A stretch of 64,000 bases of DNA, taken from assembly GCF_000315625.1 (NCBI RefSeq), contig NW_005434613.1, forward strand, positions 404,441 through 468,440, read 5' to 3'. Shown piece by piece: positions 13,707 through 61,926 of this stretch (positions are counted from its first letter, which is position 1; each line of letters starts with the position of its first letter). The position numbers and the translations under genes were made by a program. Source of the stretch: Guillardia theta CCMP2712. Taxonomy: Eukaryota > Protista > Cryptophyta. The notes beneath the pieces are model-generated. The model made no database searches and was not told where the DNA came from. It saw nothing but the letters and a program-made list of their open reading frames with translations.

Positions 13707-16700
13707 CTAGTCAGTCAACTTGTCTTGACTCAAGAATTGAGAAAGAGCGTCATGAACTTGGTCGAACAGCCTGCAGATCATTATTTCAGTCGCTGCCGTA
13801 GGAGGAGCAGAGGAAGGGAGAGGAGGAGGAATTGTAGAAATGACAAAGGGAGGTGAGGGAAAGTGGAGAGGGGAGAGGGGAGAGCAGGGGACGAAGGGGA
13901 GGAAGAAGAACAAGGAGGAGAATTGCAATGGAGGGAGGGTTGAGAGAGGAGAGAGCGAGGAGAGGAAGAACAGCAGAGGGGAGAAAGCAGAGGGGAGGAA
14001 GGGGAGGAAAGGGAGAGAGGAGAGGGGAGGGAGGGAGGGAGGGGAATAGGAACTATGTAGGAGGGCAAGGAGGGAGGATGTGGATAGGAGAGTTAGGAGA
14101 TATTTCAGACCCAGTGGCTTCCGCGTCGAAACCTCCAGCGAACTGCACGAGAGTGAGAGGAGGAGCAAGTGAAGTTGCTCGACCTGATGCACGCGGAAAG
14201 AAAACTTCAAGGCGGAGTTGAGCAGATTCTGAACCTGAGAGAGCGGCAATTTCAACGAGAGACGATGGACAGGGGGGCGAAGAGGGAGAGGGAGAAGGAG
14301 AGGGAGGGGGGAAGGAGGGGAGGGGGGAAGAGGGGAGGGAGGGGGGTAGGGGGGANNNNNNNNNNNNNNNNNNNNNNNNNNNNNNNNNNNNNNNNNNNNN
14401 NNNNNNNNNNNNNNNNNNNNNNNNNNNNNNNNNNNNNNNNNNNNNNNNNNNNNNNNNNNNNNNNNNNNNNNNNNNNNNNNNNNNNNNNNNNNNNNNNNNN
14501 NNNNNNNNNNNNNNNNNNNNNNNNNNNNNNNNNNNNNNNNNNNNNNNNNNNNNNNNNNNNNNNNNNNNNNNNNNNNNNNNNNNNNNNNNNNNNTGTTCGT
14601 CAGCTGATTGTGAACTCCGAGCGGCAGCCAACGATCGTTCTCCTTCCCATCTCTTCCCCGTATCACTGCGTCTCCTTGCAGCGCCACTAGAATTTGCTTG
14701 GACGCTCCCTGGTTTACAAGATCTGCAATCGTGATGGGCGCGCGAATGCCGTCCATGAAGATGCAGAGAACCTGTGCTCAGAATCATTTGCTCTGCTCTG
14801 CTCTGCCTCCCGAAGGCCGTGAGCGACATCTGCATGGCATACTTGGCAAGGCCAACCGTTGCGATTTGAACATTCTTGACAAGCTGGGAGAAACTTCAGC
14901 TGGGAGATAGCAAGGCAAAGGAGGGGACAAGGTGGGGAAGTAAGAGGTCGAGCAGGAGGGTAAGGGAGGCAGAGGAAACAAGAAGAGGGAGGGGGAACAA
15001 GGGAACAAGGGAGGGCATGTGAGGAGAAACGAGAGGTGGGGGGAGGAGGGAAAGGGGGAAAGGTGGGCAAGAGGGATTACGGGAAGGATGGGGAGGATGG
15101 GGAGGATGGGAAGGGGAGGAGGGCAACGGGGGCATGGGGGAGGAAGGGGAGGGGAGGGAGGGGCAGCAGCAACCTTGAAGTCGAACGGAATACTGTGTGT
15201 CTTGTAGTTCCGCATGATCTCCTCCTCAGATCGGATGTACCACTCGACCGTCGGTTTGACAGACTCGAATTTGTCAACGGCCTGCTGGAGCTCCTCGTGG
15301 ATCGCAGACTTTGCTATCCACCTGTCGTCCTCGGGGTCCATAGAGGCGACCAAACGCTCCAGCTCCTGCTTCCTCCCTGTCACCTCCCGGAGAACTTCCA
15401 GCTTCTTCTCCGGCCAAGCAGCGAAGCCCTGGAGGACAATTGAAGCGGGTCAGGGTAAGTAGGGAAGGGAGCGAGGAGACGAGGAATGCATGCAATGGGA
15501 GGGGAGGGGAACTGAGAACGATGGAACAGGAGGCAAAGCCAAAGGAGGAGTGGAAAAGGACGAGGAGGAGGAGCAGGGGGAGGAGGAGGAGGAGGAGGAG
15601 GAGATGCTTAGTTGGTTTGACTCACCTTGAGCACCATCCTCTCATCAGAGAGGAGAGCGAGCCGGCGATCGACCTCCGCAACGAAGATTTCGACCTGGGT
15701 AAGGTCTTGAGGAGCAAAGGATTGGATCTGAGGGATGAGGTCCAAGATCATAGGCTCGAAGATGCTCCTGTCGCTCATAACTTGCTTCATGTAAGAGCTT
15801 CTGCCTTCCAGCTCCTCCTTCACTCCCTTCTGTGCGTTGCCAACGTCTGCAGAGCCTGAGGAGGACTCGTTCTCCTTGTTGCCTTCTTCTGTATTCGCCT
15901 CCGACTGAGACGAGGACACTTTCTTCCTGACCACCTGGAGTACAGCTGAGCTTGACGAGGAAAGAGGAGGGGAAAGAGGAGGAGGAGAGGAGGGAGAAAG
16001 GAGGGAGAAGGAGTGGGGAGGGGAGTGGGAGGGGAGAGGAGAGAGGGGAGGGGAGGAGGAGAGAGGGGAGTGGGAGGGGAGAGAGGAGAGAGGAGAGAGG
16101 AGAGAGGGGAGGAGGGAGGAGGGAGGGAGAGCAAGGAGGAGGGAGGAGGGAGGAGGGAGGAGGGAGGAGGGAGGAGGGAGGGGAGAGAGAGGAGGAGGTT
16201 TCTCACCTTTTGCAAGGGTTTGTCAACTCGTTCGATGTTGCGGGTCAGGTCTTGGTACTTCTTGATCACCTCCCATGACTTGGCGATGCCTGACGAGCTC
16301 GACGTTGCGGCGCGTCCAGCAGGCGATACCTTGGAGGCCTCCCCCGACAACCCTTGAGGAGGCGGCGGTGGCGGTGGCGGTGGTAAGGGAGAAGCAGGGT
16401 GTGGTGTGCCCTTGTTGTGAGGTGAGGAAGCAGATAGCAAGAGTGGGGGAGGAGGGGGAGGGGGAGGGGGAGGTGGTGTTGTACAGGGAGAATTTGAGCT
16501 TGAAAAGTTGGGGGGAGGAGGAGGAGGAGGAGGAGGAGGAGGAGGAGGAGGAGTTCCGACTGAAACGTCGGTGGCAGGGCTCTTAGAACTGGGGCTGACC
16601 ATTGCAGCATTTCCATCTCGCTGACCACAGCCAGATGCATGCTGAGCTTTTGGCACTTCTGGGACCAATATCTGCCCGAGGATTGGTTCCCGTTGACTTT

Positions 16701-36191: not shown

Positions 36192-36557
36192 CTCCTCCTC
36201 CTCCTCCTCCTCTCTCCCATTCCCCATCTCCCTTTCCCCCCAATCTTCCTCCTCCTCTCATCGCAATCTTNNNNNNNNNNNNNNNNNNNNNNNNNNNNNN
36301 NNNNNNNNNNNNNNNNNNNNNNNNNNNNNNNNNNNNNNNNNNNNNNNNNNNNNNNNNNNNNNNNNNNNNNCCCTCCCCTCCCTCCCCACCGCATCCTCTT
36401 CCTCATCCACTCCAGCTCATTCGTTGGTTCCTCACGCTCATCGACAGACCTGCCGCGCTACAAGTACGAGCAAGCACTCCATCACATTCCCCGCGTCTTC
36501 GGATGTCCATCCTGCGTGCAAACGCGCGATGCGACACGAGAGCTACGACCAACCTAG
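33220..36557 (+). CDS. Spliced uncharacterised HxKG...GNFWW domain (putative glycosyltransferase-like), possibly the C-terminal part of the RCC1-repeat gene
   Basis: Small exons give CYYLAAPLD/GERWITTVKRQLKMLRES, LVDKIVVGVSG, EVPTLQLMYEHC..YVFYLHSKG (34609-34700), QDW/YMESALFEHPHLCLHAL, DACGTELYQRPHLHYAGNFWWTTCERVKQL (35343-35436), WGKPENWIG. Confidence 0.65.
35522..35600. repeat. (CAT)n microsatellite, intronic
   Basis: About 26 uninterrupted copies. Confidence 0.95.
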
Positions 36558-47689: not shown

Positions 47690-48347
47690 TCAAAAAATTA
47701 TCCCGCGCTCCAGTCGCGCTCGTTCTAGTCGCTCCTCCTGGTATTTGTCCTTGGCTCTCTGAAAGGCGATAGCAGTAGCCTCCTCCCAGACCTGAACCTC
47801 CGTCAGACCACCTGTAGCTCAAGTACAGCTGGGGGGTTACCTGGGTGGGGATGTATTCCTCCATGAGCTGATCTTCTAGAGATTCTTCCCACATGTTCCC
47901 GCTGCTCTCAAGACGAGCTATCGCCGCCTCTGCCTCCATCACAGTCATCCTTCGCANNNNNNNNNNNNNNNNNNNNNNNNNNNNNNNNNNNNNNNNNNNN
48001 NNNNNNNNNNNNNNNNNNNNNNNNNNNNNNNNNNNNNNNNNNNNNNNNNNNNNNNNTCTCCTTCTCCCTCTCCTTCTCCCTCTCTCCTCCTCCTCCTCCT
48101 CCTCCCTCCTCCTCCTCTTGTGCAGACCGCAGGCAGCTCTCGAGTCATGTGGCGAGTGATGCCGATGGCTTTGTCCCTGCGAGCCGTAAGGAGCGGGAGA
48201 GCGGAAAGACGCTGACTGACCTCTGAACCAGGAGACCTCTCACCCTCAAGCCGGGTTCCGGTAGCCTCACGAGGTTGACAACGGCTCCTGGATCTACAAG
48301 TCAACGCACTTGCTGCATCCTCGTCGTCCTCGTCCTCGTCGTCGCCT

Positions 48348-48389
<42 letters not shown>

Positions 48390-51300
48390 TCTCTCGTCCT
48401 CGTCCTTCCAGTACGTCTTCTTCCCCTCTCTCCCTCCTCGCTCTCCCTCTTCGTGCTTTCTCCCCCCGATTTCCTCCCTTCCCCTCTCTTTCTTCCGCCC
48501 ACCTGACTCTCGCTGAATCTCCCTCACAACGGAACCTCGCTGCAGACGCATCAGCCGAAGCATGCACATCGGAAGAGGGGAGGGACGAGAGGCAAGAGAT
48601 GAGAACGGGGAGAGGAGACGTGTACCGAGAGGGTGAGAGAGCAGGAGGAGAGAGCAAGAAGGGGAAGGGGGCAAAGGGGGAGGAGGGGGGAAGGAGAGGG
48701 AGGGAAGCGAGAGGGGGGGGAGGAAGAGGAGGAGAATCAAAGAAATCACCTTGCCGATGATCAACCCATGAAACTTAACTGGAATAGGCAAAAGCTCCTG
48801 CTCCTGCACACGTTCCCATGAGTCACTGACTCCTCTGCACTCATTCCTCGTCCTTCCTTCCTCCTCCCCCTCCTCCCCCTCCCTCTCCTCTTCCTCTTCC
48901 TCATCTTCCTCCTCCTCGACCGGCACCTCCTCCCCCTCCTCCCCCTCGCTCTCCTCTTCCTCTTCCTCGTCCTCATCTTCCTCCTCCTCGACCGGCACCT
49001 CCTCCTCCTCCTCCTCAACCTGCCGGTCGAGGTGTGAGCGAACAATCTTGAGCGCCTCTCGTCGCTGGCTGTTAGTCCCGGAAATCTGCCCAGCTTGTCA
49101 GAGGCGACACAAGACCCCAGCTAGTGTTCAGCTGAGAACTACCTGCAGGAAGGAGGTGTTGCCTTCCTCAATCAGCTGAAGCTTGGCTCCTGTGTCCTTC
49201 TCGATCTGACAAGAGCAGCGTCAGAGGAGGAGGATGTAGGGGAGGACTAGAGGAGGAGCTAGAGGTGGAGCTAGACGAGGTAAAGGAGGAGGAGGTAGAG
49301 GAAGGAAGGGAGGGAGTAGAGAAGTGAGAGGAGGAGGAGGTTGTGATGGTGGTGGTCGAGGAGGGTTCAAGCGTTTCTCCTCACCCCTCGGATTCTCGCG
49401 CCCTTGGCACCTACGGGGAGCATAAGAAGGCAGGCAAGGACGAGAAGGGCATGCAGGACGAGAAAAAGGAGAAGAGGAGGGGGGAAATGCTGGAGAGAGA
49501 GCGGGAGGACAGGGCGGAGAGGAGGGAGACAAGATCAGGGAGAGGAGCAGAGGGCACGGAGGAAGAAGAGTGAGATCTTCAAGAGGGAGATGGGTACCTA
49601 TCACGACTGACCACATCTCCTTGGCCAGGTACAACTTCTCCTTCCCCATGCTGTTGAGAATCCCTTGCGCAGCCTGCATCTCCTCAGCCTCGTTCCTGCG
49701 CGACTCCTCCCACCTGATACGCGGCTTTGCGCTGCGATGGCGTCCCCTGCTCGACACGTGAGCGCGGGCTACAGGTAGCAGGCAGTGGAAGGACAAGAAG
49801 GACAAGAGGAGGAGGTGTGGAGAAGGGAGGAGGGGAGGGAGGGAGGGAGGGGAGGGAGGGGAGGAGGGGANNNNNNNNNNNNNNNNNNNNNNNNNNNNNN
49901 NNNNNNNNNNNNNNNNNNNNNNNNNNNNNNNNNNNNNNNNNNNNNNNNNNNNNNNNNNNNNNNNNNNNNNCGATAGGGAAATGTACGTCCGCCCACCAAT
50001 ATTGTTTCTTTTTGCGGCCAACGTGTAAAACCCTGTATTCTTTTTTGGGAGACCTCGCGCTCCTCTTCCATGGCGAAGTGCCATGGCAGGGGGGGGCGAG
50101 GTGCAAGGTCAGCATGCGCTAATGTCATGAGGCGTAGGTCACTCTTACCCTTTCTCCCGCCCCCCGTGCCTTTCGTGATAAATACTCGATAGCATCCCCA
50201 TTCCTTCTTGATCATCGTTCGGAGAGCTATCTCTTTCCTCCTCCCCCCTACCAAGACCTCCTGCAGCATTACCCCCCTCTCCTCTGGTATGTCTCAATCA
50301 GGCATCCCAAGATGTGTTTCAGCACAAACTGGCTGCACCCATTAACATTGTGGGAGGAGGGAGGAGGGAGAGAAGGAAGAAGAGAAGGGAAGGGAGGGAT
50401 GCCGAGGAAGAGGCGGAAGCAGCAAAAAGAGAGGAGAGGAGGAGTATGATCAGGAGGGAGGGGGGAGGGAAAAGGGAAGGAGAATGGACGATAACGCAGA
50501 GGACGGGAAGAGACTGCGGATGAAGGATGATGTACCTATCCTCGCGACTTCCCTCAGGAGCGAGATCGACTGGAAGTTTTCTCCTCCCCCAGCTGAGAAG
50601 GTGACGATAGAAAAGCGACGGGGTGGGCGAACAAGAGCAGAGCAAGTCAGAAGAGGCAGGAGTGAGNNNNNNNNNNNNNNNNNNNNNNNNNNNNNNNNNN
50701 NNNNNNNNNNNNNNNNNNNNNNNNNNNNNNNNNNNNNNNNNNNNNNNNNNNNNNNNNNNNNNNNNNTCTCAGTCGGTGCATCAATCATACTTCCTTACTT
50801 CCTCCTTTTTTCGTTTAACCTTTTGCTTTCCGCGTTCCCCCCAGGCAATAGGGTTTAATCCAAGGCTTTTACCTGACGCTTATCAAAGCTCTACCTGACG
50901 CTCGACCTGAAGCTCCGTCATCCTTCCATCATCGTCTCTTGCTCCTTCCTCATTTCAATTTGTATTCCCTACCCCCTCACCCTCCCTTCTCCACCTCACT
51001 GTGATGTTGTTGTTGCTGTTGTTTTGTCTTTGTCTTTGTCTTTGTGTTTGTTTTTGTTGTTGACGATGATGATGATTACCATTCTGACCCCTTCTCCTCC
51101 TCTTCCTCAAGATTTGCTTGTTACCTGCTGAAACATTCCCTGCACTTTGACTACTTTGCCGAAGCTTTCCTGCAGGACTTAGTTAGCCTTTCCCTTTCCA
51201 GCTTCCCTCCTCATCCTCCCTCTTCCCTCCTTGATCTCCATCTCCTCCTCCTCTTCGTTACCATCAAGTCAACAACGTCAGCTGGTCGAGCACTGTAAGG

Positions 51301-53078: not shown

Positions 53079-56000
53079 ATGCCTCGCTGCAAATGCTGCC
53101 AAGAGAAACGGGAGGAGCAAGACAAACCTCCGTCTGCTTCCTCCCTCACTCTCGAGTCTCCAAAGGTGAGGGAGGGAGAGGGAGGGGAGCAGTAGCTCAA
53201 GAGCAGAGGTCGCGATCGTGTTGAGCTCACTGTGATGCCCTTACGGCAGGTCGACAACAGCATGAAGTTCGATCCAGAGCCGCCCCAGGGACGGCCGGCC
53301 GCTCATGCGAGCGATCCAGGCGGAGAAGGGGAGGAGGGCAATGGCAAGAGCAGCCCCCTGCAGTGGCGGAGAATGCGAGTAGCCAGGAATGGGGTACGGT
53401 TTTCTGCTGCTGCTTCATCCGTCTTGGCTGACTCGCCTCCCCTTGCAGTCATGGAGAAGTTTCTTTCAAAGCTCCAGTCGAGGTGGACCCCAGCCCGTGA
53501 TGCAGAGGAGCCGATCTGAAGGATCGTTCAAGAGGAGGGAGGAGGTGGTAAAGGGGAAGAAGGCGGTGAAGGTGGAGAAGGTAGTAGTGGAGGAGGAGTT
53601 AGTGAGAGACAAGGGGGCAGTGAAGGTGGAGGAAGTGATGAAGGTAGGGAAGGAAGGGGAGGATGAGGCAAGAAGGGAGGTGCAGGAGCTGGTTTCAGAG
53701 AGAAGCATTGAGGAGAGCAAGATCGGCAGAGACCTGAGTCATCAAAGTGAGGATTCTGAAGAGACGTTGAACTCAGAATGCGACTGGTCGGTCAGGATCC
53801 CACCAGGAGATAGCAACGAACTTCACGAGAACCTTTCAGAGCTGTCGGAGCCGGAGGAGGACGAGACCTCAATGTCGTTGACTCAGGTGCTTGCCTGCAC
53901 TCCTCCTCCTCCTACTACTACTACTACTGATGAACTTGGCCAGACTTCGAGTCACTGGATGAGTCAGCATCTGCGGGTCGTCGCACAGCAGCAGCTCCAT
54001 GCTGCATCCTCGGCCATGACTCCTCTCAAGGTGACCGACGGGTTGGTCACGAGCAAGAACGACCCAGAATACAGGTAAGCGTTGGAAGGAGGAGAAGCAC
54101 GAGGAGGAGGAAGGTGGGGGAAGAGGGAGGAGGAAGGTGGGGGGATAGGGAGGAGGAAGGTGGGGGGATAGGGAGGAGGAAGGCAAAGGGGGGGGGGGGG
54201 CGGGGGAAGGAGGAGGAGGAGGAGGAGGAGGAGGAGGAGGAGCTTGATTCTACCGTAGACTCTCAGCCGGATGGATGGACAATCCTCCATCGCCGTACCG
54301 AGAGCAGGATGACACCTCTCTCGCTCTCTCTGCTGCCTCCTATGTGGTCGACACCAGGTCACACGCACTCTTGTCCACCTTCTCGTCATCTTCTCGCAGC
54401 TGGCGAGAGAGCCCGAGCATCAGAGGTCATGCCGCGATGATGTACTGGAGGATCCTCGAGGAGAGATGTAGTCCATCTCCTCCTCCCCTCCTCCTCCCCT
54501 CCTCCTCCTCCTTCTGCTCCTGCTCCTGCCCTCCTGCTCCCGCTCCCGCTCCCGCTCCCGCTCCCTCCCTCACCCGGTTAGCAGCCACTGGCAACTTGAG
54601 TCGGAATAAGAGGATCAGGTTTGTGCTCGCTCTCGATGCCTCAGCCGACCCTCCTCTAGATCATCTTACTATTCTCCTCGTACCTCACTTCCTTGCATCC
54701 CCCCTCTCCCTCCCTCCCCCCCTCCTTCTTGTAGAGCAGGCGTGACTGGCATCTGCAGGAGCAGCCGCAGGCGCGGAGAAGGGAAGGAGCAGCCGGGATG
54801 GCTCACGATTCCGAGCAACATCGAGGAGCGCAGAGTTGCCCTCATCCAGCAGCACAAGGTGCAATTGGAGGAGGAGGAGGAGGAGGAGGNNNNNNNNNNN
54901 NNNNNNNNNNNNNNNNNNNNNNNNNNNNNNNNNNNNNNNNNNNNNNNNNNNNNNNNNNNNNNNNNNNNNNNNNNNNNNNNNNNNNNNNNNNNNNNNNNNN
55001 NNNNNNNNNNNNNNNNNNNNNNNNNNNNNNNNNNNNNNNNNNNNNNNNNNNNNNNNNNNNNNNNNNNNNNNNNNNNNNNNNNNNNNNNNNNNNNNNNNNN
55101 NNNNNNNNNNNCAGGAGAGGATATCGATGCAGGAGTCGGAGGAAAGCGAGCAGCTGGTTGTCCTCAAGGGTGAATGAGAAGGCATCTACTCTCGGGCACT
55201 CGCGCAGCAAGGAGCAAGACAAGCCTTCCTCTCCCTTTTGTCCTGCTGTGAAGAACACAGCACTACAACGCTTGCTGCAGAAGCAGGTTGAGGCTACTTG
55301 CCTCCCTCCCCTCCCCTCCTCCCTAAACCCGTCCTTCCCTTCTCTGATCTCCCTTCCCTCCCTCCTCCCCTTCTCTGCTCTCCCTCCCCCCCCTCCTTCC
55401 CCTTCTGTTCCTCCCTGTCGGCCTCCCATCCTTATCCCACACTCCCCGTCTGAACTCCTCTTACGTCGAGCGGGTTTCTCACACAGTCAAGCAGCAACAA
55501 GTCTTGTACTCATCGTCGCCTCTCTCTCCCGGTCGACTCGTCCCTGCTCCTCCTCTCCTGACCCTCCCGCAGGAAAGATGGAGCCTTCAGCTTCCACCAC
55601 CGCCGGGTGGTCGTTGGTTCACCATCAGATCAGCATGAAGGTGTTGGAGCGGCAGGAGGGTCCACTTGTCCTGACCGCTTTCAGCTCGACGAGGACGACC
55701 AGCCATGGCCCTCTCCTCTCCAGCCCGGCCTCGAAAATACTGTACATCTCCGCTCCAGCTGAATTTCAGCTGAATCCTCCGTGTTGCAGCCGACCCCCGC
55801 CAAGAGCCTCAAGAGCAGGAGGACCGCAAAGGTCTGCTCTGCTCCAGCTGGGCTGGGACGCTTGCATCTCATTCGACTTGTCTTGCAGTGCTCCGTGTCA
55901 GAGCTGCCGAGCTCCGAGCAAGGCATGTCGATGCTCCGATCCATTTCCTCCTCCCTCGCATGCAGCAAGGTAGAGCAGCTCCTGCCTGAGCCCGTTGACT

Positions 56001-56104
56001 CTTTCCGCAGGTGCAGCTGGACTTCGACGAGTCTTGAAGCTCGCCAACCCCCCCCCCCTCCCCCTCCCCCGTCCCGCCCTTCCCCTCCTCCCCCTTTCTC
56101 TTGA
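53079..56104 (+). CDS. Hypothetical intron-rich protein, low complexity
   Basis: ATG 53079 (MPRCKCCQEK...), a long acidic exon ~53520-54075 and several small GT-AG-bounded exons; no family recognised. Confidence 0.4.
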
Positions 56105-56120
56105 CTCAGCTCCTCGTCCT

Positions 56121-56339
56121 TCACTTCTGCTGTAAGACATCTCAGCGAGGACAGACAGCTCGCCGCCTCCTGCTCACAGTGCGAAGTTTGTTCTCGAGCA
56201 TCTTGAGGCGGAGGAGGGTGTTGTTGATCTTGGTAGATACCCCAACGTGCTCCTGTGAAGCATCAGAGGAGGCAGCAGAGATGGTGTGGGAGCGTGAAGG
56301 CTTGAAAGACACGGAGAAGGTTGTCGACGATGTTGATTC

Positions 56340-56416
<77 letters not shown>

Positions 56417-59400
56417 AGGAGTATTTCAGACCTCGATGTCACTGGTTGTCTGTATCTTCATGGTTCGAATGTCATGGCCTATCAGCCGGATGTTCTGGAA
56501 CCTGCGGCTCTCAATCAGCTGGTGACGTCAGGAGCTCAATCAGGGACGGACTTGTCCTTCCGCCGTGTCTTCCCCTTCCTCCTCCTCCAGAACAACTGCA
56601 GGAGCTGAGCGCTCTTCTCTTGGAGATGGTTTCGGAGGATCTCGCGTTCAATCAGCGCCTGGTCGTGCTGCATCAGACATCTCTTCCCCCGCCCCTTCCT
56701 TGGCATCCCGCCTGCCACACCCAATACTCCTCTCCTCCTCTGTCTTCTTCTCCATCCTCCTCCTACTTGTCATTCTCTTCCTCCTCTTCCTCTCCCCCTT
56801 CTCCATATCCTCGTCCTTTCCATCTCCTCCTCCTCCTCGCCCTCATCGTCCACCCCTCCACCCCCTCCCCCTCCTTTGGTCCTCCTCTCTATCTCCTCGC
56901 CCTCGCCCTCGCCCTCGCCCTCGCCCCCCCCCGCCCTCTGGTCACCTTGGCTGTCGTCTCGGAGCTGCTGAATTGGAGGAGGTTGGTGAGGGCGGCAGTG
57001 AGGAGGGAGGCCGCCACCAGGCCGATCTGCGAGCTCACCTCAGCCGCTGCTGCTGCTCTACAAGACAATCACCATGGCCGCCAGACAGGCTACGAAGCGG
57101 CTGACGGAGGTGGTGGGGACGATGTCACCTGAAGGAAGTGATGATGATGATGATGATGAGGAGGAGGAGGGCAAGACCGTAACCGACGGTGGTTGAGGTG
57201 ATAAGGATGAACCAGATGGCTGTCGTCATGCGCATGTGGCTGCTCTTGTTGAAGTCCATCCCATGGATAACCCAGTGCTGTAGCAGACAGTCAGCAAGGA
57301 GACGAGGACGAGAGGAGCAGCGACGTACCATGGCGTTGGGGTTCGCGCATGCTGGGACTTCTTCTCGGATATGAGGTAGAGTACAGGCGGTGGTCTCAGC
57401 CGCTCGGAACCAATAGGCTGCAGCAGCGTCACGAGAGGCGTCGGAGCCTGAGCACTTGCCAAGGAGGACGATGGCGATCATCCACACGAGGGACATGTAG
57501 ATGGCTGCATACCAACTGGCAGCAGGTGAGAGAAGGAGGAGGAGCGACGGGGCAGATGGCACCTGTGCATGATATGCTTGATGGCAAACGATGAGCCGAT
57601 CTTGGTCCGCTGGAAGCCAGACAGGGTTTGATGTTTGGGGAAGACGGAGAGGATCCAATCCCTGAGGACTCGCCAGCAGAGGTAGATGCGGATCAGGTTG
57701 CAGCCGCAGAGGATCGTCTCTCCACAAGTGACGTAGATGTTGTTCTCTCCGAGGTTGTCCGTCACTGCGCACACGATCGTCATATGGTCAAGGCCCCCAG
57801 CCTCTGCTGCTCACCCAGCACGAATCTGTATGACGGGGGGTTGTGGACGAGGACGAGGACGAGCTCCAGCCACAGGGACGGGTCCAACAGCCACCACACT
57901 CCAACGTCGGTGATCTGTCATAGGCATCGGTTAGGAGGAGGTGCCGGGAGCAGGTTCTTACCAGGTCAGTGAAGCAGTGAACATGGAGGCTGACAGCTTC
58001 CAACAACCGCGCGATGTAGTACATACGCAAAATGAAAGCTGCACATGAAAGAGTGCAGATGCTGTTCATGGCCTTGAGCGCGTTCATGGTGACGTCGCTC
58101 TGTCCTCCTCCTTGCATCAGGTACTCGTTCTGTGCCACCGCAAACAACGTGCCCGTCATCCCAAGCAGAGCTGCCCACTGCCTGTACGACTGCTGCGCGC
58201 CATGGAGGGCCTTGAAGTTGTGGTGCCATTTGCCCGTTCCGTCCCTCTGCGTCATCGCCTTCTTGACTCGCATCTTGAAGCTGCCAGATCGTTTGGACCC
58301 CTGCATCGAGGGAAACGTTTGACCGTCTTTAGACAGCTGGTTGATATCCCTCCTCCCTATGCTGTTCATGGAAAGTCTCCGCACCAGCGGAACTTTGGCT
58401 ACTGTCGCTTCCTCCTCGATCGTTTCAAGCATCCCCTGCAGATTCTTGACACGGCTGAATATGATGTCCACCTTGTTGTTGTCTGAGCCGGATGTTTCGA
58501 TGTCAACGTACATCTTGTCTTTCATGTGAATCATCGCAGTCAACGACATCTTGGGTGAGTTCAATAGAATCTTTATCCACCAATACAAGTTCTGTAAACA
58601 ACAAGGTCAGTGCGTGCTTGCTTTGCTGCCGATGCTTGCCTTGAAACGGCTTGTGCTGCCTCTTGCTATTTTCTTCATCCACCACATTCGGATTCTACCG
58701 TCACTATCAGTCGCCTCAACCTCTGACGCGAACACATTACCGCTTGACAGCTTCAGACTGTACATGTCTCCTTGCTCGCTCCCTCTCAAAGATCGCCAGC
58801 GTCCGTGCTTCTTCAGGGTTCCATTGGAACGCGTTGCTGGAGGAGGACAACGTCACTAGCCGCACGAGGGTCCAGCTGAGTCTCACCTGATGGAGGCTGT
58901 CATGAGAGACGCGAACATGAGCCCGAGGAACGCCATGAGGATGCTCGTCATGCGGCCCAGCAACGTCACGGCGTAGATGTCGCCGTAGCCGACCTGCAGG
59001 CACGTCAGCTGCACTGGGGCCGAGGGGGCATGTCAGACCGAGGTGGAGGTGATGAACATGGCCCAGAGGGCGTCGGAGTATCGCACGAGAATCGACTCTT
59101 TCTCTAGGCTCCCGCTGTCTATTTGCCACAGAACGGCCTCAGGCAGGAAGCAGGAGGGGTGGTCGTGGAAGGGGAAGAGACATGCTGACGTCTCGAAGGC
59201 ACGGAAGAAATATCCGAGGACGAGCATCGAGAACATCCATGCAAAGGTCACGAACTGAAAGCCTTTCCATCCTTCGAGCAGCGACTTCAACACGTAGAAG
59301 CTCCCAATGTTGATCTGTGTGAAGGCCTCGATCGTGAAGTGTTTGGGCATCGTTTTGATGATGAAATCTCTGATGCATCTCCACAGCAAGTAAATCCTCA

Positions 59401-60301
59401 AGATGTTGTAGACACAGAATATTGTCTCTCCCCTGTACAAGATGAAGTTCCCATTCTGAACCTCCATGCCGAACTCTGGAGAGAAAAAGGGGGGAAGATG
59501 AGGAACGCAGATCAGCAGTTCGAGCCAGAGCCCTCGGCTTGCAAGCACTTGTAAGAATCCGACCTCTTTGATCTTGGTATTCTTTGACGATTTCACCCGC
59601 AGCCTCCGATTCATCGCAACCAGACGCAGCTGCATGCGGTACATGTAAAAGATCCAGACTGCACACACGAAGCTGGAGAAAGAGTTGAGAGCCTTCAAGA
59701 TGTCGATCTTCCCTGATTTAGGATGCCACCGGTAGATGAGCTCGTTCTGAATGATTGCAAGGAAGGTCCCAAAGATTCCACTGCAAGCTGCCAACAGGCT
59801 GTAAAACCTTCTCTGGGAATCAATATCGTTGCGACGCACTTTCATCTCCACAGCCTTCTCGACGCCCTTGGAGGTGATGCGATGCATCTCTATCATGCTC
59901 TGCGAGAAGTTGGGAGCTGCATACTTGCGATCCTTCAAGCGCGCTCTTCTCTGGTTGGGCGTCTCCCTTCCATCCTCATCTTTATCCTCCCTTTCTTGGG
60001 GTTCTGCGGTGCGGTCCGAGCTCAAGGTCTTGCTGCTCTCCATGTCAGGCATCAGATTGCGCAGCGACTGGCGGCGGACGAGGTCTTCAAGGATCGAGAG
60101 CCGCCTCTCGATCTCCGGAAGAACCTGCGGGGGGCTCGCCACAACTTTAACTCCAAACAATGTCTCGACCTGTTCGATCTCCAACCCAATCTCCTCATCT
60201 TTCATACTCTCCCATCTCCTCCAGAGGTGCGAAGGGCGGGATGGGATGCACTCTGCGGTAGCTGCGCCCATAATTTTCAAGCGAGGAATCATCCAGGTCA
60301 T
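56121..60301 (-). CDS. SK/KCNN-type Ca2+-activated K+ channel with two tandem 6TM-pore repeats
   Basis: Repeat I: GIFGTFLAIIQNEL, LWLELLICVPHLPP, LRIYLLWR, ALWAMFITSTS/VGYGDIYAVTLLGR. Repeat II: GMTGTLFAVAQNEY, LWLELVLVLVHNPP, IRIYLCWR, AIWFILITSTTVGYG/DIVPTTSVSR. Each has a CaM-binding-like helix (EAVKRIRMWW; KSAQLLQLFWRR). Start may lie further upstream (~60455). Confidence 0.88.
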
Positions 60302-60659
60302 GCGCGGTTGTCTCTGTCCACTTCAGCGAAGGGTATTGCTCCGGCTTTCCACCTCTTGCCATCTCCACCAGTCGCTGTGATCCCTTCTCAGCTATAGAGA
60401 CGCTCGTCGTCCATCTACCTCTGGCTCCAGATCTTCCATCGCCTGCATCAAGCATTCACATCCCCTTCAGTTCTCCTCATACCATACCTCCTCTCCATCC
60501 CTTCCTCCTCCTCCCCTCCACTTCTCACTTTCTCGCCCCCCTGTGATACTGCCAGGTTGCCCTTTGAAACCCTGCACCCTCTTCCCTCTCATCATTACCC
60601 TGTCTCTCATGTCTTTCTCTTTCCATTCCCTATCTTTCAGTCTCTTTCTGAATCTGTCT

Positions 60660-60816
60660 GGTGCTAATCATCTCTTCCAACGGCCTTTGTCTGTATCTCT
60701 CTCTGTCTCTGTCTCTGTCTCTGTCTCTGTCTCTGTCTCTGTCTCTGTCTCTGTCTCTGTCTCTGTCTCTGTCTCTCTGTCTCTGTCTCTGTCTCTGTCT
60801 CTGTCTCTCTCTGCTG

Positions 60817-60865
<49 letters not shown>

Positions 60866-60881
60866 GTCTCTCTCTGCTGTC

Positions 60882-60940
<59 letters not shown>

Positions 60941-60988
60941 GTCTCTGTGTCTCTGTCTCTGTCTCTGTCTCTCTCTGGTCTCTCTCTG

Positions 60989-61026
<38 letters not shown>

Positions 61027-61047
61027 ATCATCTCTTCCAACGGCCTT

Positions 61048-61140
<93 letters not shown>
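60660..61140. repeat. (CT)n/(CTGTCT)n microsatellite with a duplicated ~30-bp unit taatcatctcttccaacggcctttgtctgt
   Basis: Direct sequence; unit at ~60665 and ~61025. Confidence 0.95.
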
Positions 61141-61142
<2 letters not shown>

Positions 61143-61926
61143 TGATCTCCTCCCTTGCTTCAATAATATATCTGCTTCCGTGCACCACCCCAATGTAATA
61201 AGGTCCCCCACCACCCTACCCTTCCATCTTACACCCCATAATTACCCTCAAATCACCCACCCCTTTTAATCCCTGTAAACCCACCCACATCGCACCTCCC
61301 AATTACCAATTATTCGTTTTTTGTACCCCTACCCAACCCCACCTTCCGGAAGCCGACACCACTCCCCCACCCCCAACACGAAAGAATCCTCTTTACCTAC
61401 CCTATAGCTTACCTCAATATACCCCCTATTTTCCCTCAGGGGTCATGGAATATCTTCAGTCCGGTGAGTTACTACCGGCACCCTCATCATCCCACCCCCG
61501 GTCAAGAAAATTAAAACGTTTTAATCTTTTAGAGCTGAAATCATCAACTTTTTCATCAACTTCGACTTTCAACCCCAAGGCCTCAGGGGCAGCAAGAGGC
61601 ACCATCGCCCTCCCAGCTATATACCCTATAGTCGAAATCTCCTACCTTCCCCCCTTCCCCCCAGGCTCCCTCTCAGGGTCCTGGCTTCCTGCCCTCCCCG
61701 CTCCTCACCTTGCAGAGCATCGAAAAGTTGATAAAATCTCCCCACATTTTACAAATGCACATACGGTCATTGTTTGAATATAAACGTCAAATCTTCATGT
61801 TAAATTTCAAAGCTGTAGGTGCAGAACAACATCATTTCACTCTATCGGAATGACCAGCGCGAAAGCCCGAGGCCCGGTCACGTTTAGCTGACTAGTAGTA
61901 CCCCTCAATATCAGCATCAGGGTCAC

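Follow-up and report, generated by a model that had tools for sequence, protein, structure and literature searches.

A cryptophyte gene with two SK/IK-like potassium channel units in one reading frame

SK channels are the textbook example of calmodulin gating in a four-fold symmetric channel, and the number of calmodulin sites needed is usually studied with artificial concatemers. A locus of the cryptophyte Guillardia theta CCMP2712 raises the question of whether two such channel units can be encoded by one natural gene and, if so, what kind of channel the product would form. The locus lies in a stretch of 64,000 nucleotides (i.e., positions 404,441 to 468,440 of contig NW_005434613.1, assembly GCF_000315625.1; referred to here as the window) from a eukaryotic genome of 87.1 Mb in 669 contigs. 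The gene occupies positions 60301-56121 on the minus strand of the window (public locus GUITHDRAFT_142197), and an original prediction made from the letters of the window described it as a single gene for a two-repeat, SK/KCNN-type K+ channel. The evidence supports a single gene whose one mRNA encodes two intact, SK-like six-transmembrane (6TM) units.

In the six-frame open reading frames (ORFs) of the minus strand between 60301 and 56121, pieces of a K+ channel, including a GYGD filter, occur twice. We derived exon joints from contigs of four public runs over 55900-60600, with X1 and X4 representing different studies. A DNA contig (run X11, record 7) covers 57177-60515 without splicing, so the introns are genomic, while the X1 and X4 contigs skip short GT..AG or GC..AG stretches on the minus strand and are therefore spliced RNA. 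The introns skipped by the transcript contigs are 58994-59038, 58837-58886, 58695-58740, and 58592-58639 (GC-AG) in repeat I; 57915-57961, 57765-57814, 57516-57562, and 57418-57459 (GC-AG) in the first part of repeat II; and 57278-57328, 57027-57072, 56502-56551, and 56130-56177 in the rest of repeat II. Three more introns (57129-57177, 56659-56945, and 56253-56431) lie in simple repeats and were placed using canonical splice sites and the exact length of contig X1 record 2. When joined, the 16 exons of this splice model give 3096 nt with 0 internal stops, encoding 1031 amino acids (aa) and ending with a TGA stop at 56123-56121. The resulting features are as follows.

56121-60301, minus strand: coding span as modeled, 16 exons, with the real 5' end probably lying upstream of 60301
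59039-60301, minus strand: exon 1, encoding the N-terminal cytoplasmic region and, from repeat I, S1-S5 and the pore helix, up to ...ITSTS (open frame; joint 58990/59036 in X1 and X4, cut +3 = GT-AG)
58887-58993, minus strand: exon 2, VGYGD of filter I and S6 of repeat I (transcript joints; Pfam Ion_trans_2, E = 1.6e-7)
58741-58836, minus strand: exon 3, first post-S6 helix (HA-like) of repeat I (joints 58836/58887 in X4 and 58694/58741 in X1 and X4)
58640-58694, minus strand: exon 4, 55 nt, ...RIRMWWMKKIARGSTSRFK, end of HA-like helix I (joints 58694/58741 and 58591/58640, the latter a GC-AG intron, in X1 and X4)
57962-58591, minus strand: exon 5, 630 nt, HB-like helix and coiled-coil tail I, 54-aa linker, S1-S2 of repeat II (ORF 57788-58588; gapless in X1 record 2 and X4 record 11; identical in P0023)
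57815-57914, minus strand: exon 6, S3 region of repeat II (joints in X1 and X4)
57563-57764, minus strand: exon 7, hairpin, S4, and S4-S5 linker of repeat II (joints in X1 and X4)
57460-57515, minus strand: exon 8, first part of S5 of repeat II (joints 57515/57563 and 57417/57460, the latter a GC-AG intron)
57329-57417, minus strand: exon 9, end of S5 and turret of repeat II (transcript joints)
57178-57277, minus strand: exon 10, pore helix and TTVGYG of filter II (joint 57277/57329; 3' boundary placed at the GT at 57177 and confirmed by P0023 identity)
57073-57128, minus strand: exon 11, D of filter II and first half of S6-II (joint 57026/57073; P0023 identity)
56946-57026, minus strand: exon 12, second half of S6-II and start of the post-S6 region (joint; 3' boundary by contig arithmetic and P0023 identity)
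56552-56658, minus strand: exon 13, HA-like helix of repeat II, ALIEREILRNHLQEKSAQLLQLFWRRRK... (X1 record 2 piece 56550-56657; joint 56499/56550, cut +2; P0023)
56432-56501, minus strand: exon 14, HB-like helix and start of tail II, MKIQTTSDIE (transcript joint; P0023)
56178-56252, minus strand: exon 15, coiled-coil tail II, KINNTLLRLKMLENKLRT (joint 56129/56178 in X1; 5' boundary deduced and confirmed by P0023)
56121-56129, minus strand: exon 16, QK and stop TGA (joint 56129/56178)
58409-59863, minus strand: repeat I, aa 147-568, S1-S6, TSVGYGD, HA/HB-like helices, coiled-coil tail (family profile envelope; elements mapped from the AlphaFold2 [AF2] model of the homologue P0003)
58247-58408, minus strand: inter-repeat linker, aa 569-622 (54 aa), basic and Ser-rich, predicted to be disordered in the homologue (AF2 model of P0003 and mapping)
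56124-58246, minus strand: repeat II, aa 623-1031, S1-S6, TTVGYGD, HA/HB-like helices, coiled-coil tail (family profile envelope; alignment of the halves)
60140-60215, no strand: aberrant assembly stretch inside exon 1 (84 other letters in X11, X1, and X4; frame shifted relative to the upstream ORF)
60443-60487, minus strand: 5'-region intron, GT-AG, 45 nt (joint 60441/60487, cut +1, in X1; loose end of X4 at 60444)

The two SK-like units and the motifs quoted for them in the original prediction are all present on the minus strand in one spliced frame. The two filters are non-identical and intact, as had been proposed; each is split by an intron (TSVGYGD, aa 420-426, 59044-58979; TTVGYGD, aa 895-901, 57193-57124). 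The tails carry MKDKMYVDIE (58525-58496) and KVDIIFSRVKNL (58474-58439) in repeat I and MKIQTTSDIE (56461-56432) and KINNTLLRLKML (56231-56196) in repeat II. The three short introns said to link the units in frame (58837-58886, 58695-58740, and 58592-58639) are removed in the spliced contigs. They connect the S6-I exon to the exon with tail I and the start of repeat II; one of them is GC-AG, and the 55-nt exon at 58640-58694 lies between two of them. Most introns of the gene are very short (42 to 51 nt), and 2 of the 15 coding introns (58592-58639 and 57418-57459) are GC-AG rather than GT-AG. The simple-repeat introns 56253-56431, 56659-56945, and 57129-57177 consist of microsatellites of the (CTCCTG)n, GAGGGC-/GGAGGA-, and (TCA)n/(CTC)n types on the gene strand, and these, when translated, resemble low-complexity ORFs.

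Two adjacent single-repeat SK-like genes could give the same appearance if the fusion were due to read-through, a chimeric assembly, or a gene model error. A contig across two genes does not alone prove a single transcript, and X1 assembles the locus as two contigs, broken at intron 58837-58886. However, the X4 contig spans this break: record 11 (2856 nt; depth, 687) starts in the 5' region, crosses repeat I, and reaches the pore helix of repeat II, while X1 record 2 (1756 nt) runs from the post-S6 region of repeat I past the stop codon. The junction between the repeats over 58900-58400, which the original prediction had proposed to examine at the RNA level, is thus joined in spliced transcript contigs. 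No stop occurs anywhere between the repeats, and a single 630-nt exon (57962-58591) encodes tail I together with the linker and S1-S2 of repeat II in one open frame. The UniRef protein A0A7S4KUL3 (i.e., P0023; 617 aa), which derives independently from G. theta transcriptome data, matches aa 415-1031 with 100% identity and spans filter I, S6-I, the post-S6 helices, tail I, the linker, and the whole of repeat II to the stop. Moreover, the same layout is found in the transcriptomes of at least three other named cryptophyte species and one MMETSP transcriptome and at four to five G. theta loci. The two-gene reading is largely refuted, and we regard it as scarcely credible.

What kind of channel unit is it? 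Repeats I and II are 31% identical over 420 residues (E = 4e-56), a similarity far beyond chance given this E value, and each contains S1-S6, an intact filter, post-S6 helices, and a coiled-coil tail. The units score 468 and 397 bits against the family hidden Markov model (HMM), and Ion_trans_2 of Pfam matches the window channel. A phmmer search with repeat I alone gave no PDB match at an E value of ≤1. A family profile built from 18 single units (alignment A1) was compared with all PDB sequences and ranked KCa3.1/SK4 first (E = 1.6e-27) and SK2 next (6e-24); pore-only matches such as KcsA (~1e-13) followed at a distance of at least ten orders of magnitude. The alignment takes in S1-S5, the pore, S6, and the post-S6 helices as far as SK4 residue 367-382. 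An hhalign comparison with a mollusc SK protein (P0225, carrying Pfam SK_channel and CaMBD) gave a probability of 99% (E = 2.3e-18), with 343 aligned columns that begin at S1 and reach the C-terminal coil. In place of the window protein, we folded a complete two-unit homologue from Hemiselmis tepida (P0003) with AF2 (mean predicted local distance difference test [pLDDT] score, 69; predicted template modeling [pTM] score, 0.61; membrane cores, 75 to 93). Both units of the model have S1-S3, a beta-hairpin, S4, two short S4-S5 helices (predicted at residues 183-190 and 196-203 in unit I and 696-703 and 709-717 in unit II), S5, a pore helix, S6, and three long cytoplasmic helices. The top 20 Foldseek matches of this model were all SK2/SK4 (E = 4.5e-9 to 2.4e-4; TM-score by target, 0.53 to 0.78), with KCNQ (>3e-3) and TPC (0.016 and 0.16; TM-scores by target, 0.18 and 0.13) following. 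Profile and predicted fold together support the assignment of the unit as a whole to the SK/KCNN type.

The double unit is shared by a gene family, and the duplication is not peculiar to this gene. A single-sequence search of 1.84 billion representative proteins gave only 187 relatives at an E value of ≤0.001. Among the proteins fetched, at least 19 contain two near-complete units. Two-unit transcriptome proteins come from Hemiselmis tepida, H. rufescens, Teleaulax amphioxeia, and one MMETSP transcriptome, which answers the earlier proposal that algal transcriptomes be searched for two-repeat homologues; Proteomonas, Rhodomonas, and Hanusia contribute partial members. All named family members are cryptophytes. 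Profile searches of a word-indexed protein database (best 8000 candidates) added few members, and they have no bearing on absence outside cryptophytes. The nearest protein-atlas cluster is labeled "Ciliophora," a label that rests on one member, and we set it aside because no ciliate relative was confirmed. Many database proteins appear to have a single unit, and these nest in the unit I or unit II clades; since they come from unspliced metagenome ORFs, we treated them as fragments and not as single-repeat members.

Within G. theta, a search with repeat I returned paired same-strand matches, 1.4 to 2.2 kb apart, on contigs C25, C27, and C19, and the short contig C423 carries a two-unit remnant, so that the genome contains at least four to five two-unit loci. 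The further loci, each with both units on one strand, are as follows.

L014 (G000:C25:705500-715499): two-unit locus found by the repeat I search
L015 (C27:511000-520000): two-unit locus found by the repeat I search
L016 (C19:826500-836000): two-unit locus found by the repeat I search
L017 (C423:1-7000): two-unit remnant found by the repeat I search

GUITHDRAFT_106691 (996 aa) and GUITHDRAFT_137762 (1111 aa) are the GenBank models of two such loci. Some paralogues have one unit with a non-canonical filter: LTIGFGE (P0172), LTIGFGD (P0191), CTVGFGD (P0006), and TALGYGN (P0004). An intron-free, 1064-aa two-unit homologue (P0007; L030:8001-11195 in GCA_031546385.1) lies on a gene-dense 15-kb contig and adjoins an asparagine synthase gene, which suggests that the tandem family is also present in an intron-poor genome. 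A more conventional SK-like ORF of G. theta (524 aa; L001:439-2013, minus strand, on G000:C42) has one unit; it matches PF03530 (32 bits) and Ion_trans_2 and groups with animal SK channels, not with the tandem family.

A maximum-likelihood tree placed 20 of 20 cryptophyte units in one clade (94/89), apart from animal SK channels and from the single-unit gene of G. theta. Because it lies inside this cryptophyte clade, the duplication is independent of those that produced TPC and Cav/Nav, as had been predicted. The unit I and unit II labels are clustered on the tree (4 changes versus 6.9 to 7.1 when shuffled; equaled in only 5 to 9 of 500 shuffles), and monophyly of all units I was neither rejected (p-AU = 0.18) nor recovered.

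On this evidence, we consider it probable that a single nuclear gene, through one mRNA, produces a concatenated pair of SK/IK-type (KCNN-like) subunits. The two units would be joined by the 54-residue cytoplasmic linker. Since the end of S6 and the start of S1 are both cytoplasmic, units can be joined head to tail with no change in topology. Four pore loops (P-loops) are required for a K+ pore, as when two-P-loop chains pair into one pore in K2P, TOK, and TPC channels; therefore, two of the two-loop chains would form a K+-selective pseudo-tetramer with P-loops I and II in alternation around the pore. Both filters should line the pore, because both are canonical in the window gene, and four tail coils (two of each kind) may bundle below it like the HC helices in SK4. 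Intracellular Ca2+ would open the channel via calmodulin or a calmodulin-like protein on the HA/HB-like helices, and the expected gate is a pull of Ca2+-bound calmodulin on the S4-S5 linker. With two non-equivalent sensor sites, gating could be asymmetric. Most likely, a whole SK-like gene was tandemly duplicated and then fused within the cryptophyte lineage, and the arrangement then spread by further gene duplication. The extension of this scheme to a cryptophyte family of natural "concatemer" SK channels (i.e., two-chain pseudo-tetramers with alternating filters, two kinds of sensor/coil modules, and asymmetric, 2+2 Ca2+ gating) is a tentative proposal.

That scheme presumes that both repeats contribute to the pore. 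One repeat alone might instead provide a conducting pore loop, with the other degenerating or regulatory, in which case no symmetric 2x2 pore would form; several paralogues do have a non-canonical filter in one unit, and the repeats are just 31% identical. Nevertheless, both filters of the window gene (TSVGYGD and TTVGYGD) are canonical, its units score comparably against the family HMM, and two chains with two loops each supply exactly the four P-loops needed. We thus judge a pore built from one repeat to be very improbable.

Several observations weigh against the concatenated, Ca2+/calmodulin-gated SK/IK-type reading. The Pfam CaMBD domain (PF02888) matched no family member tested. When the post-S6 profile was compared alone, the similarity to SK4 was not significant (E = 1.8), and hhalign against the mollusc SK protein gave a probability of 4%. 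The Pfam SK_channel domain (PF03530) scored 21.7 bits in repeat I of the window channel, under the cut-off of 31.8, so that of the two Pfam signatures expected at the outset, Ion_trans_2 was recovered and SK_channel fell short (GUITHDRAFT_106691 reaches 35.4 bits, and other family members reach 26 to 28 bits). The SK/KCNN label stands for the whole unit, by profile and fold, and is weaker for the calmodulin-binding region. The dimer, the K+ selectivity, and the Ca2+/calmodulin gating are all inferred from homology. At the transcript level, X19 provided 9 raw RNA reads, which are too sparse for transcript ends or strand, and shorter extra isoforms (e.g., from an internal start for repeat II) may exist, being compatible with the transcript contigs. 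The assembly defect in exon 1 touches the N terminus; the two-repeat finding is unaffected by it. In the phylogeny, the unit trees are star-like with a poorly resolved backbone, and the two units of H. tepida P0003 pair together (98/96; 44% identical), unlike those of other members, which points to gene conversion between the halves or a separate re-duplication. A single ancient duplication is accordingly not proven, and we claim no dated one.

These observations leave room for a tandem K+ channel without calmodulin gating, whose post-S6 helices and coils would serve only for assembly and whose gate would respond to voltage, direct Ca2+ or lipid binding, phosphorylation of the Ser-rich basic linker, or another EF-hand protein. 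The silence of PF02888 and the insignificance of the post-S6 similarity to SK when taken alone favor it, as do the many alternative sensors in G. theta (at least 146 EF-hand matches) and the three arginines retained in S4 of each unit (LRIYLLWRCIRD and IRIYLCWRVLRD). Against the PDB, the post-S6 profile alone found generic coiled coils first (reovirus sigma-1 and GCN4), and the distal tail looks like a generic coiled coil. A complex prediction for the post-S6 region of repeat I (P0023:40-125) and calmodulin (L020:1495-1935, minus strand) gave scores of 0.13, 0.38, and 0.07 against a mark of 0.34, which speak neither for nor against binding. On the other hand, the whole unit, including the HA/HB/HC positions, is colinear with SK2/SK4 (in the full-unit profile, the post-S6 region aligns with SK4 288-378), and the place of the SK LRETW motif is taken by a conserved W-W/basic motif. 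The S4 pattern, LRxYLxxR, is that of SK and unlike the charge array of Kv-type channels. The homologue model also predicts an SK-type two-helix S4-S5 linker, which in SK4 is the docking site of the calmodulin N-lobe. We consider a channel of this non-calmodulin kind unlikely, though a serious contender, and retain the Ca2+/calmodulin-gated subunit pair as the preferred reading. A calmodulin gene of G. theta is at L020:1495-1935 on the minus strand (G000:C26); its 147-residue open frame, beginning AEQLSEEQIAEYKEAF..., lies in one exon and the initiator ATG in another. On contig C32, L018 encodes a centrin (ending ...KKTSLY).

How does this channel compare with known systems? Like the animal SK/IK channels (KCNN1-4; KCa2.x and KCa3.1; SK4-calmodulin structures 6CNM/6CNN and SK2 structure 8V2G), each unit is colinear from S1 to the C-terminal coil and has a GYGD filter, the S4 LRxYLxxR pattern, a two-helix S4-S5 linker (in the model), and HA/HB/HC-like helices, and SK2/SK4 are the best and only strong PDB matches of the cryptophyte units by both profile and fold. 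Animal subunits, however, carry one unit each and form tetramers, whereas the cryptophyte protein carries two units per polypeptide and a dimer is expected. Identity between the cryptophyte units and SK channels is just ~17 to 26%, with Pfam CaMBD not detected, and the cryptophyte units differ in having an extracellular beta-hairpin before S4 and conserved cysteines in the turret. Unlike animal SK/IK, the tandem family is restricted to cryptophytes as far as the named members show.

The original prediction regarded internal duplication as the hallmark of TPC and Nav/Cav channels, which proved overstated. Two-repeat tandem Kv-like and CNBD channels were described in dinoflagellates, oomycetes, and a chlorarachniophyte by Pozdnyakov et al. 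(2020; PMC7576140), who concluded that internal oligomerization arose many times; KCa channels were outside their survey. Those channels likewise combine S1-S6 plus S1-S6 and two P-loops in one protein, with repeats of ~30% identity, and are likewise read as independent internal duplications or fusions followed by co-evolution of the halves (PMC7576140). They are Kv-like or HCN/CNG-like (voltage sensor, CNBD) and belong to stramenopiles, alveolates, and rhizarians (SAR), while the present ones are SK/IK-like, have coiled-coil tails, and belong to cryptophytes. Pfam found no CNBD domain in the family members tested, and Kv and HCN structures ranked far below SK. In addition, Kuo et al. (2005; PMC2234077) mentioned 12-transmembrane (12-TM), two-pore K+ channels in the Paramecium genome as "unpublished data" without stating the channel type; these share the S1-S5-P1-S6-S7-S11-P2-S12 topology, and none of the named matches of our sequence searches was a ciliate protein. 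TPC1/2 also have 2 x 6TM per chain and a pore formed by a dimer (the dimer being inferred here), but their repeats are Cav/Nav-like with non-K+ filters, whereas both cryptophyte repeats have GYGD and match the TPC fold weakly (0.016-0.16 versus 4.5e-9 for SK). K2P (4TM/2P), plant TPK, and fungal TOK1 (8TM/2P) channels share two P-loops per chain, a dimeric K+ pore, and non-identical filters; they are without two full S1-S4 domains and SK-type cytoplasmic helices. Full-text literature searches found no paper specifically on these locus tags, on SK-type tandem channels, or on cryptophyte K+ channels. Thus, as to whether the architecture was already characterized, the general tandem two-repeat form is published, and the SK-type tandem channel family appears to be undescribed. 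The cryptophyte SK/IK-type channel is a new version of a known tandem two-repeat 6TM architecture and not a categorically new design.

Two parts of the reference need attention. First, window positions 60140-60215 (76 nt) are replaced by 84 different letters in the DNA contig X11 and the transcript contigs X1 and X4 (joint 60139/60216), and 60136-60215 (80 nt) are 100% identical to the opposite strand of another contig of the same genome (G000:C119:49226-49305). This 80-nt patch in exon 1 is probably a gap-filling or assembly error of the reference that breaks the N-terminal frame. A related protein (P0001; 94% identical) is in frame from an ATG at ~60455 via a bridge of ~28 residues into ASPPQV.... 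In X1, the intron 60443-60487 is removed, and at its acceptor X4 continues into a different upstream sequence; therefore, the first exon or exons lie further upstream. Because of the foreign patch, the P0001 frame, and this 5' splicing, we place the true N terminus probably upstream of 60301, and the start ATG originally assigned to that position is doubtful. Second, the GenBank (2012) model GUITHDRAFT_142197, a "hypothetical protein," is one gene across both repeats and is mis-spliced in four places: it omits 40 residues that belong to the post-S6 region of repeat I, those of exon 58640-58694 among them, keeps the GC-AG intron 57418-57459 unspliced, mis-splices the filter-II and S6-II exons to give VGYGLALLLL..., and is without the final 27 residues. 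As a practical matter, this model and the foreign 80-nt piece need correction before cloning. Upstream of the gene, at 60600-61200, lies a (GA)n/(CT)n-type microsatellite block with spurious ORFs of ~200 aa in several frames. Runs of N (assembly gaps) occur at 54890-55111 (~1 kb downstream of the stop), 1978-2077, 2184-2283, 14356-14593, 36271-36370, 47957-48056, 49871-49970, and 50667-50766.

A natural two-repeat SK-like protein with diverged halves would fix the stoichiometry at 2+2 and offer a ready-made system for asymmetric gating, selectivity with non-identical filters, and heterotypic coiled-coil assembly. With it, the independent 6TM internal duplications, which so far comprise Kv-like, CNBD, TPC, and Cav/Nav channels, extend to the KCa/SK branch and to the cryptophytes, and as a further independent case it supports the view that such fusions arise easily. 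If the reading is true, the family would provide an extant illustration, from a ligand-gated K+ channel, of the first one-to-two-repeat step on the way to TPC and then Cav/Nav. The cryptophyte flagellate relies on channelrhodopsin-driven photobehavior, in which the channel, if it is as proposed, could be a Ca2+-triggered repolarizing conductance.

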